A stretch of DNA of 63,936 nucleotides, counting the filler, from Olpidium bornovanus S191 (taxonomy: Eukaryota > Fungi > Olpidiomycota): assembly GCA_017911155.1 (NCBI GenBank). It is 25 parts of 25 records of this genome, joined end to end, with 100 filler letters (N's around TTAATTAATTAA, not from the genome) between each part and the next. Parts side by side here need not be neighbours in the genome. Positions count along the whole stretch, not along the records: positions 34,253 to 36,372 come from JAEFCI010008762.1; 24 more parts are not named here. One strand, given 5' to 3'. Made by a program: the position numbers and the translations under genes. Below the pieces are notes generated by a model. That model was not told where the DNA came from and ran no database searches. It saw nothing but the letters and a program-made list of their open reading frames with translations. This document shows, piece after piece, positions 34,253 through 37,013 of this stretch (the stretch's first letter is position 1; each line of letters begins with the position of its first letter).

Positions 34253-35465
34253 CATGTCCGTCATAAAGCCGCAGTCCAGCGGAGTACCGCTGAACGCGGT
34301 TCCGGGCAGGACGAGCTGCGGCGCGTGAAACGGGACGTCAATGAAGTCGGGGAACAGAATGGCCGCGGTGTCGTCAGAGGACACCTGGTTGACGAGAGCT
34401 TCCGTAACTCCGGCGGCCGCAGGTAGCACGGGATCGACATCCGCTGCGGGGACATCGGAGTGACCGGCAAGAAAACGCGGGCTTCTTGTGAGGCGAGTAC
34501 TCAACTGTGACGGACGCGACGATCAAATCTTCACTTGCGAGGCATTTTGAGAACGTGGTTATTCGTCTCGGTAGGGCGGACTCGAAGAGCGGCAAAGCCG
34601 TCGTAACGATGCCCTGTGAGGACGAAGGTGACTGCTCTGGGCGATCTCGCAGACTTCGCCCTCCCGGCCAGTGCACCCGACGGCGCGCGATTCCAAACGA
34701 GGGGTGTCGATTTCGACAGGCTGCACGCTCGCTCTTCATCCGCTGCTGCCGCAGGACGCCACCGGGCGGGGTGGGTCCGTCGTGCCGGTCCTTGTGACCG
34801 GGGAGAACGAGGGGGAGTGAGGGTGATCGTCGCGGCAGTGCCGAGTCTGGCACAGTATGGCGGTCTCTCCTGTCGGACGAACGCTGCTGGTTCGCCGAGA
34901 TCGATTCCGGCCGGCCCGCGGCCGCCGTCGTGCTTCCCGACCAAGGTCGTGCCGTCGCAAAACCATCTCGTTTCGAGGAGCTGGTCGACCTCTACGGCGG
35001 CGGCGCCGGCGTCCGGCAAGCAGAGCATGGGCGCCTCGGCGTCGTTGGTTTCGCCGTCGAACATTCCGCACGCACGGGCGGGCCCTGGAGCGGGCGGCGG
35101 AGGGGCCCACCGCCGCACCGCGGCAGGCGGCTGGACGGGCCCCAAAGCGTCGGTTAACGCTTTCAGCTGCGCGGCGAGCGCGTCGCACTTGCCGGCGAGG
35201 ACGGCGTTCTGCAGCTCCGCGACGCGGAGATGCGCGGCCAGCCCCTCGTTGTCGCGAGTGAGCCGCGCGACGGTGCCTTCCAGCTCCGTGACGTAGCGCC
35301 GCTTCTTTGCACGCGACTCGTGCGCCGCGGCGCGGTTGCGCACTTTTCTCTGCTCCAAGGTGCTCAGCTGCTGCTGCTGCTGCCGTTGCCTGGCGGGCGC
35401 CGTTCCACGCGCGCGCGACGGGACGGTGTTGCCGGAGAAACTTTTGCATCGTCCGGCCACACCGC
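34253..35465 (-). CDS. HAC1: Hac1/XBP1-type bZIP transcription factor; partial at both ends
   Basis: Basic region RKVRNRAAAHESRAKKRRYVTELE plus leucine zipper, and EPAA at an IRE1-type stem-loop. A probable upstream exon starts at 35864; its junction is unresolved. Confidence 0.85.
34447..34886 (-). other. Predicted IRE1-cleaved non-canonical intron (440 nt)
   Basis: 5' hairpin has loop CAG^CAGC (34889-34883); 3' hairpin has loop CCG^CAGC (34449-34443). Both cuts fall after the first base of a codon, in different frames. Confidence 0.8.
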
Positions 35466-35896
35466 CTGAAGGTGTTGCGTCGGTAAAGCTTTTTTTTTCG
35501 CGCGAACGGAACACGCGGAAAAAGGGGCGGGGCGGGGTGGGGGGAAAGAGAGGGGGAGGATACGCGAGTTACGAAACGGCAGAAACGCGGCGGGTGGGAG
35601 AGGAGAACGCCGGATAAGGGGGTTTGTGGGCGAAAGGCGGCTGCGCGCGGATCCTGGCAGCTCGGGGGAGGGGCGCAGCAGACTCACGGCGGGGTGCGTT
35701 TCATCCCGGCAGGCAGGACACCGGCGGCCGCCGACGGCGCTGACGCGGCGCCGCTGACCTCCGCCGGGCGCGGCAGCGCAAGGGACGCGCCCCGCGCCGA
35801 CGCGGGGGGGCCGTCGGCGGCGTCGGCGGCGGCGCTGGCGAGAGGCAGGAGGGCAGCGGCGTCCATCGGGGGGCCTCCTGTTGAAGCCGGGGGGGG

Positions 35897-35930
<34 letters not shown>

Positions 35931-36087
35931 GTTTGTGGGAGGCGAAGTGAGGGAAGAAGCGGTTGTGGCGTGCGGCCTCCCTTCCTCGCGAGAAGAAAAT
36001 TTAAAAAGAGTTTACAGATTTTAGTTAATACCAATTCACACGAACTCAAAGGCAACAAACTCAAGCAAAAAAAAATAATAATTAGTA

Positions 36088-36157
36088 CTGGCAGTAAGGA
36101 TTGAACCGATGACCTAGAGTGTAACGTGCAAATTACTAGCCGTTTAGCTACGCGGTT
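36088..36157 (-). pseudogene. Degenerate tRNA-like sequence (tRNA pseudogene or SINE head)
   Basis: A-box-like TAGCTAAACGG, B-box GGTTCAATCC and a downstream T9 run. The acceptor and anticodon stems do not pair. Confidence 0.4.
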
Positions 36158-37013
36158 TGGAACTGAAGTACTAGCACCACAGCAGGTTTATATAGTGCTA
36201 GCAGCTCTCAATGTTCCGGACAAGCTTGGTGCCGCTCCTGTGGTGCGCAGCGCGCTCTTGACGCTCCTGTTGCCGGTCTTGATGTTCCTGATGTGCTTAA
36301 TGACGCTCTCAACGTTCCGGACGTGCTCAATGCCGCTCTCGATGCTCTTGACGTGCTCAGTGTCGCTCATGANNNNNNNNNNNNNNNNNNNNNNNNNNNN
36401 NNNNNNNNNNNNNNNNTTAATTAATTAANNNNNNNNNNNNNNNNNNNNNNNNNNNNNNNNNNNNNNNNNNNNCATGGTTAAAGCGGCTAGCCTAAAAGAT
36501 TCCAGGGAGAGAGGGGGTACACGGGTGTGTTACATCATCTCACTCGTTGGAAACCGTCAGTATCTTGGAGTTATTCGCTCGCAGGTACCGTTCGAGTTTT
36601 AAAATTTCATATAAAACATTCTGACTACGTGAACTCAGAACAACAATCCTTGCAACACTGTTCTTTATCATCATCGGCTCAACTATCTGTTTCACATCCA
36701 AGCTGTGTACTGTAGTCTGCACAGCGATCTCCATCTTAAGAACTGCATCTATAATCAGCGGTGTCGCACGTTTGTGATTGCCACCAGCACACTGAGAAAA
36801 ACAATTGCTTTAGCTAGGACCATGATGCGTGTATAACTATTTCGTGCTCGTGCTCGTATGGTCTCGGGAAAGTAAAGGTCTTCTTTTATATCATTATAGA
36901 GCACAGATCTGGAGTGGGGGAACAAAAAAGTGCTAACACTCGGATTAATAGCTCTACTCAACGTTTGACTGTATTCCAACATGACGGACGCGACATCCGG
37001 AGTGTTTTATAAC

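Follow-up and report, generated by a model that had tools for sequence, protein, structure and literature searches.

The HAC1 mRNA of Olpidium bornovanus very probably contains an IRE1-type intron of 440 nt. This reading combines observation with interpretation: two hairpins, a retained segment and an open frame beyond it were read from the sequence, and we infer cleavage by IRE1, ligation of the exons and dependence on stress. The gene lies on the minus strand of a 2120-nt piece (34253-36372), which is a contig of an O. bornovanus metagenome-assembled genome; positions are those of the window, the whole stretch of 63,936 nt of DNA. Judged by its sequence, the Olpidium gene displays every feature that is expected of the family of IRE1-spliced bZIP mRNAs. 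Its parts are listed in Table 1.

Table 1 Features of the O. bornovanus HAC1 locus, in the order of the gene (5' to 3').
Feature	Position	Strand	Basis or remark
Coding exon 1	35688-35866	-	ATG at 35866; 3' boundary from RNA-contig joint 35688/35488
Ordinary spliceosomal intron, 199 nt, GT..AG on gene strand	35489-35687	-	Starts GTGAGT; skipped in RNA contigs X1 and X2
Coding exon 2	34887-35488	-	Ends at predicted IRE1-type 5' cut, after G34887
bZIP basic region and start of leucine zipper (RNRAAAHESRAKKRRYVTELE...)	35227-35355	-	Pfam match; motif in all orthologues
Closing helix, 5' strand	34900-34927	-	Exon 2, upstream of 5' hairpin; minimum-energy fold
5' splice-site stem-loop	34876-34898	-	Loop CAG/CAGC 34889-34883; predicted cut after G34887
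Predicted IRE1-excised intron, 440 nt, non-GT-AG	34447-34886	-	Two hairpins; present in RNA contigs
Conserved internal intron hairpin	34677-34755	-	Islands GATGAAGAGCGAG and ACACCCCTCGTTTGGAATCGCGCGC; RNAalifold
Stop codon TGA of unspliced reading frame, within intron	34531-34533	-	Read from ORF
3' splice-site stem-loop	34435-34457	-	Loop CCG/CAGC 34449-34443; predicted cut after G34447
Closing helix, 3' strand	34411-34438	-	Exon 3, downstream of 3' hairpin; minimum-energy fold
Exon 3, acidic C-terminus, predicted to be read only after excision	34253-34446	-	Truncated by piece edge

Gene identity and transcript structure

The open reading frame starting at 35514 matched the Pfam families bZIP_1 (E 1.6e-8) and bZIP_2 (E 4.5e-7) over residues 54-96. 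A profile search of 1.84 billion representatives returned a single close relative, P0002, the next matches being bZIP proteins of Mucoromycota and Zoopagomycota, and one homologue is named 'bZIP transcription factor HacA [Rhizophagus clarus]' by its source (BLASTP E 2e-13). The basic region RNRAAAxESRxKKRRY (RNRAAAHESRAKKRRY) is common to the O. bornovanus protein and the Mucoromycota and Zoopagomycota orthologues, with a consensus across all homologues of (L/I)RNR(A/H)AAQ.SR(D/E).KR(R/K). An earlier note on this DNA had taken the gene for a HAC1 orthologue in an early-diverging fungus, and the bZIP domain, the shared basic region and the HacA-named homologue bear this out. The sequence evidence thus supports its assignment as the HAC1/HacA/XBP1 orthologue, a stress-response transcription factor, of this root-infecting zoosporic fungus. 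Separately, the bZIP profile matched a 4333-residue library protein (P0003) at 24 separate places; P0003 may be a repeat protein of an unusual kind, or it may reflect an artefact of assembly or annotation.

RNA runs labelled as O. bornovanus contain the piece, and assembled contigs of two independent studies (runs X1 and X2) lack precisely 35489-35687, the ends of which read CT..AC on the plus strand; these contigs therefore derive from spliced mRNA. From 35488 to 34253 the same contigs are contiguous and keep the 440 nt, and they extend 209 nt past the edge of the piece. This excludes the 440-nt segment as a constitutive spliceosomal intron and makes the unspliced form the dominant one, as would be expected of HAC1 mRNA without stress. 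The contigs, in which rare isoforms are lost, contain no 34887/34446 junction and show the unspliced form alone; two raw-read runs (X21 and X24) contributed 0 reads over the piece. No protein of the spliced form was found in database searches with the whole ORF, with the profile (1.84 billion representatives) or with the C-terminal region of P0001. Three positions (34390, 34685 and 35158) distinguish the RNA runs from the assembly: the variant at 34390 changes Asn to Asp within the acidic C-terminus, and that at 34685 converts a G-C pair of the internal intron hairpin to G-U. Just upstream of the ATG (35881-35939), about 30 consecutive A and then a stretch of C occur on the gene strand, and the RNA contigs end there, at a homopolymer run.

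The NCBI protein BJ554DRAFT_1552 (P0001) is a partial model. Its first-intron acceptor differs (35392-35488 region), and it reaches the C-terminal frame by way of internal introns that lie between 34887 and 34446; neither feature agrees with the RNA contigs, and the present analysis thus corrects the public gene model. The expectation that gene finders would miss the active isoform is supported, P0001 using internal introns that do not appear in the RNA contigs. Each orthologue annotation that we read likewise shows the unspliced form or resorts to false introns.

It could be argued from P0001, which arrives at the same C-terminus by predicted introns, that the downstream frame is reached through small spliceosomal introns of this kind and that the hairpins are coincidental or serve another purpose. 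We consider this very improbable. The contigs of both studies run through 34253-35488 without those introns, yet a real GT-AG intron has been removed from them; the proposed boundaries are CA..CG; and the hairpins are conserved and covary across phyla. A constitutive spliceosomal intron behind the frame change, which the earlier note had named as the competing explanation, is ruled out by the RNA contigs.

Twin hairpins and the predicted excision

The 5' hairpin, UCGG-CGAAC[CAG/CAGC]GUUCG-U-CCGA, is the minimum-energy fold obtained with RNAfold (-11.2 kcal/mol, z -2.5). The 3' hairpin, CGAUGUCC[CCG/CAGC]GGAUGUCG, has 8 bp including two G-U pairs, and its stability taken alone is not above that of shuffles (z -0.8). 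The stems comprise 7 bp at the 5' site and 8 bp at the 3' site, and both 7-nt loops fit the consensus CNG/CNGN. The predicted intron starts with CAGC and ends with CCCG, so that its borders are CA..CG and not GT-AG. On the sense strand these two sites are the only CNGCNGN loops with a stem of at least 5 bp, and when the 2120-nt piece was shuffled 2000 times with its dinucleotides preserved, two or more such hairpins arose in 1.2% of cases. A further hairpin at 34274 (TGGA-CTGCGGC-TTTA) is weak and was attributed to chance. A search of Rfam on both strands with E up to 10 found no HAC1/XBP1 family and gave two chance matches, FTX_5 and gntR-DTE.

Joining G34887 to C34446 yields ...GIDLGEP-A-ADVDPVLPAAAG...FPDFIDVPF..., a frame that stays open to the edge of the piece. 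Within the piece, exon 3 encodes 64 residues of the C-terminus, with 9 D/E and 0 K/R, and in silico excision replaces a basic tail (pI 11.8) with this acidic one (pI 4.05). The earlier note had described both hairpins, a 440-nt excision (34886-34447) moving the bZIP frame into an acidic frame, and a stop of the unspliced frame (34533-34531) inside the intron; the hairpins were confirmed to the base by reading the sequence, the change of frame was reproduced in silico, and the stop lies where it had been placed.

Comparison with a second Olpidium-like species

A 1755-nt Logan RNA contig (L001) encodes P0002, the close relative found in the profile search, and represents a second Olpidium-like species; its protein is 40% identical to that of O. 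bornovanus, and its G+C content is much lower. The 5' site of L001, GGCGAAC-CAG/CAGT-GTTCGTC at 837, differs from that of O. bornovanus only in the last loop base, and its 3' site, TCC-CCG/CAGC-GGA at 1281, is conserved in the core. The predicted intron is 444 nt long and contains a stop (1235-1237), and the joined frame extends for a further 109 residues, its stop lying at 1610-1612. Both species have an acidic C-terminus in the spliced form (pI 4.05), with 9 and 17 D/E and 0 and 1 K/R in O. bornovanus and L001, respectively, and the unspliced tails are strongly basic in both (pI about 12). Because the two spliced C-termini are only weakly similar (BLASTP E 0.12), the species agree here in composition and not in sequence.

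In the nucleotide alignment of the two species, near-identical islands correspond to the 5' site, the 3' site and a pair of internal elements, the intron being otherwise diverged. In codons that specify the same residue in both species, the third base is kept in 8/8 codons at the 5' site and in 7/8 codons of the intron island, compared with 17/33 in the bZIP domain, and the constraint therefore acts on the RNA. A metagenome pattern scan gave 0 matches with the intron island; with the 5' site pattern, one bacterial contig (L010) matched and was judged to be chance.

Closing helix and internal hairpin

In the minimum-energy fold of the whole region, 34927-34900 pairs with 34438-34411 in O. bornovanus to form 25 bp with small interruptions, and in that of L001, 804-825 pairs with 1293-1314 in 22 continuous bp. 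The flank duplex of O. bornovanus has an energy of -54.5 kcal/mol, and the z values against shuffles are -4.0 for O. bornovanus and -7.8 for L001. The outer halves of the helix are unlike between the two species (GGCGGCCGCGGG/CCUGCGGCCGCC versus AAAGCGGAACAA/UUGUUCCGCUUU), indicating that the pairing has been kept by compensatory change. This helix between exon sequences is an enlarged form of the closing stem of the classical twin-hairpin motif, and it would bridge the intron, keeping the two sites and then the exon halves close to each other.

A second conserved structure lies inside the intron. The second of its two islands (ACACCCCTCGTTTGGAATCGCGCGC) is identical in L001 at 25/25 nt despite the 40% protein identity. 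RNAalifold predicted 30 pairs over the whole alignment, about 28 of them in the stem of the internal hairpin, which shows two compensatory changes, one G-U/A-U change and a 9-nt indel located exactly in the apical loop.

Reading frame of the unspliced mRNA

The bZIP frame remains open into the intron for 117 codons in O. bornovanus and for 131 in L001 (P 0.048 and 0.008 against shuffles, respectively), and the indels between the two species are in frame as far as a conserved intron-encoded peptide, AAADEER...STPLVWNRA. These data hint at translation of the unspliced mRNA to give a basic tail, in the manner of XBP1u and HacAu, but they are suggestive and not conclusive in a sequence rich in G+C: one other frame of the intron is free of stops, and open frames are common at 63% G+C.

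The earlier note had proposed that the intron might also repress translation, and for this we found no support. In both Olpidium species, neither the longest complementary helix between the 5' UTR and the intron nor the best 30x30-nt duplex exceeded shuffles, and the unspliced frame is open for 117-131 codons into the intron. The 5' leader used in the pairing scan has an undefined mRNA 5' end in O. bornovanus and comprises 142 nt upstream of the ATG in L001; RNAduplex applied to long stretches was uninformative for this pairing.

A tentative further idea, which we regard as possible but rather doubtful, is that the intron constitutes a regulatory module of its own, with the internal hairpin (34755-34677) and the conserved peptide acting on the unspliced mRNA or protein, and that the exon-exon clamp permits long introns, with an undescribed range of 41-444 nt in early-diverging fungi. 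Such a module might serve in delivery to the ER or IRE1, or it might regulate how stable the unspliced form is or how it is translated.

Conservation in other early-diverging fungi

The genomic loci of eight Mucoromycota and Zoopagomycota orthologues (L002-L009) were scanned for loops of the same kind. The predicted introns measure 41 nt in Syncephalis, 47 nt in both Basidiobolus and Actinomortierella, 53 nt in Podila, 107 nt in Endogone, 131 nt in Calcarisporiella, 182 nt in Rhizophagus and 254 nt in Mycotypha, so that none of the eight falls within the classical range of 20-26 nt. The frame was traceable in seven species (the two Olpidium species, Mycotypha, Rhizophagus, Calcarisporiella, Endogone and Basidiobolus), and in all seven the twin hairpins occur at one and the same peptide position, ..(R/G/C)(E/D/G)(S/P)/A-A... 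The predicted intron length is 2 modulo 3 in 9/10 species, the exception being L001, in which it is a multiple of 3 and contains a stop.

Across the ten species, the 5' stem is 86% paired, compared with at most 50% in slid controls, a percentage that is biased upwards because the sites of the relatives were picked by the hairpin scan; the compensatory changes and the shared peptide position are free of this bias. The covariation score of the 5' stem was 0.63 versus 0.29 in shuffles, with 0/500 shuffles reaching 0.63. The core of the 3' site, TCC-CNGCNGC-GGA, is conserved in all ten species, and the 3' stem has three conserved base pairs only, without significant covariation in this set. The covariation in relatives for which the earlier note had proposed to look is therefore present at the 5' stem and not significant at the 3' stem. 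Among the weaker sites, the 3' stem of Rhizophagus has just 2 bp, and Mycotypha has CAGCACG as its 5' loop. An acidic sequence closes the joined frame of Endogone, Calcarisporiella, Mycotypha and Rhizophagus, and it contains a DF.LLDDL.DWDGQQ-like motif in Endogone, Mycotypha and, more weakly, Calcarisporiella.

Could the loops be functionless matches, with the open frame downstream being a by-product of high G+C? Open frames are indeed to be expected in such a sequence, one of the other intron frames has no stop at all, and the 3' hairpin is thermodynamically unremarkable. Such a chance origin is nonetheless extremely unlikely given that the two hairpins together are expected in so few shuffles, that both sites are kept at synonymous positions in a species with 40% protein identity, and that the sites are orthologous in ten species.

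The HAC1 proteins annotated for Endogone, Calcarisporiella, Rhizophagus and Basidiobolus (P0005, P0006, P0043 and P0025; L003, L004, L006 and L007) represent the unspliced form and run past the 3' site in the other frame. Their four tails share a hydrophobic, W-containing stretch and end in (W/Y/R)-P-P-stop, which the Olpidium tails do not have. By analogy, these tails recall the membrane-binding region and C-terminal pausing peptide of XBP1u, as well as stalling peptides that end in Pro-Pro-stop.

Proposed mechanism

On the basis of these features, the primary transcript loses its ordinary 199-nt GT-AG intron, and the resulting mRNA, retaining the 440-nt segment, encodes a bZIP protein with a basic, intron-encoded tail of 117 residues. 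ER stress is then predicted to trigger cleavage by IRE1 after G34887 and G34447 within the 7-nt CNG/CAGC loops. The 25-bp helix of exon sequence outside the hairpins would keep the sites, and then the exon halves, together across 440 nt, and tRNA ligase would join the exons, with the result that the in-intron stop would be removed and the frame shifted to an acidic C-terminus of the activation type.

The same hairpins might instead be sites at which IRE1 or another nuclease cuts for decay (RIDD-like) or regulation without ligation, the basic-tailed protein then being the sole product. Consistent with such a role, the RNA contigs show the unspliced form only, and the unspliced frame is open for 117/131 codons into the intron and includes the conserved peptide. 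Decay or regulation of this kind would not account for several other observations, however, and we judge it to be improbable: both Olpidium species have an open, acidic frame beyond the 3' site; the motif downstream of the 3' site is conserved in Mucoromycota; all but one of the ten predicted introns are 2 modulo 3 in length, and the exception, that of L001, a multiple of 3, has a stop inside; and the clamp between the exons is what ligation would need. Excision of the segment followed by ligation thus remains the reading that we favour.

Relation to known IRE1-type introns

Long introns have been described for HAC1 of Saccharomycotina (PMC6222058): that of S. cerevisiae has 252 nt, that of C. 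glabrata 379 nt and that of C. parapsilosis 626 nt, and Lodderomyces reaches about 848 nt. Those of hacA in Pezizomycotina are 20-23 nt long (PMC13703316), and metazoan XBP1, plant bZIP60 and Pezizomycotina hacA together span 20-26 nt (PMC13703316, PMC4891664). Our literature search, the scope of which did not extend to the main survey (Hooks & Griffiths-Jones 2011), found no paper on HAC1 introns in Olpidium, Mucoromycota or chytrids.

The Olpidium gene resembles HAC1 of S. cerevisiae and other Saccharomycotina in having a bZIP mRNA with two splice-site hairpins and a non-GT-AG intron of hundreds of nucleotides, a stop of the unspliced frame within the intron, and a new C-terminus after the predicted excision. 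In S. cerevisiae, the unspliced HAC1 frame reads about 10 codons into the intron, whereas that of Olpidium reads 117. Also unlike S. cerevisiae, pairing between the 5' UTR and the intron was not detected above shuffles in Olpidium, and the 25-bp exon-exon clamp and the conserved internal hairpin are prominent in Olpidium relative to the Saccharomycotina genes.

With XBP1, bZIP60 and hacA, the Olpidium gene shares the loop consensus, CNG/CAGC as in XBP1, an exon stem that flanks and closes the twin hairpins, and a shift of frame on excision (440 being 2 modulo 3). It differs from them in that its intron is about 17 to 22 times longer and in that its unspliced frame ends inside the intron, whereas theirs overlaps the spliced frame downstream. 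The Mucoromycota and Zoopagomycota orthologues are similar to it with regard to the hairpin cores, the peptide position of the junction (in the seven frame-readable species) and the 2 modulo 3 length, save for that of L001; their introns are predicted to be shorter, however, and the Olpidium tails are basic, with the stop inside the intron.

The earlier note had set a long intron against the usual 20-26 nt. The length itself stands, but the jump does not: with relatives predicted at 41-254 nt, the Olpidium intron lies at the upper end of a range and is not a leap from 20-26 nt. Taken together with these predicted lengths, it suggests that early-diverging fungi do not conform to the textbook figure of 20-26 nt. 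Among the introns compared, that of Olpidium is the longest of the IRE1 type outside Saccharomycotina. Given that Olpidiomycota and Saccharomycotina are different lineages, the length of the Olpidium intron arose independently, and we thus have an independently lengthened intron in a phylum in which one had not been described before. Olpidiomycota are the zoosporic lineage closest to terrestrial fungi, and the presence of a long IRE1-type intron in this phylum means that expansion of the intron at this site happened outside Saccharomycotina. The gene offers a natural system in which to study how IRE1 and the ligase would handle sites that are 440 nt apart, by means of a long exon-exon clamp.

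Other features of the piece

ARAGORN found no tRNA in the piece. An AT-rich stretch on the minus strand (36080-36190) contains a GGTTCAATCC motif that resembles the T-arm of a tRNA, and no tRNA is called in this stretch by ARAGORN or Rfam. A 30-nt tandem repeat (2.8 copies, 80% match) occupies 36284-36368, at the far end of the piece, and is covered by low-depth contigs from one RNA run; it may belong to an adjacent gene that ends here and encodes a peptide repeat of 10 residues.
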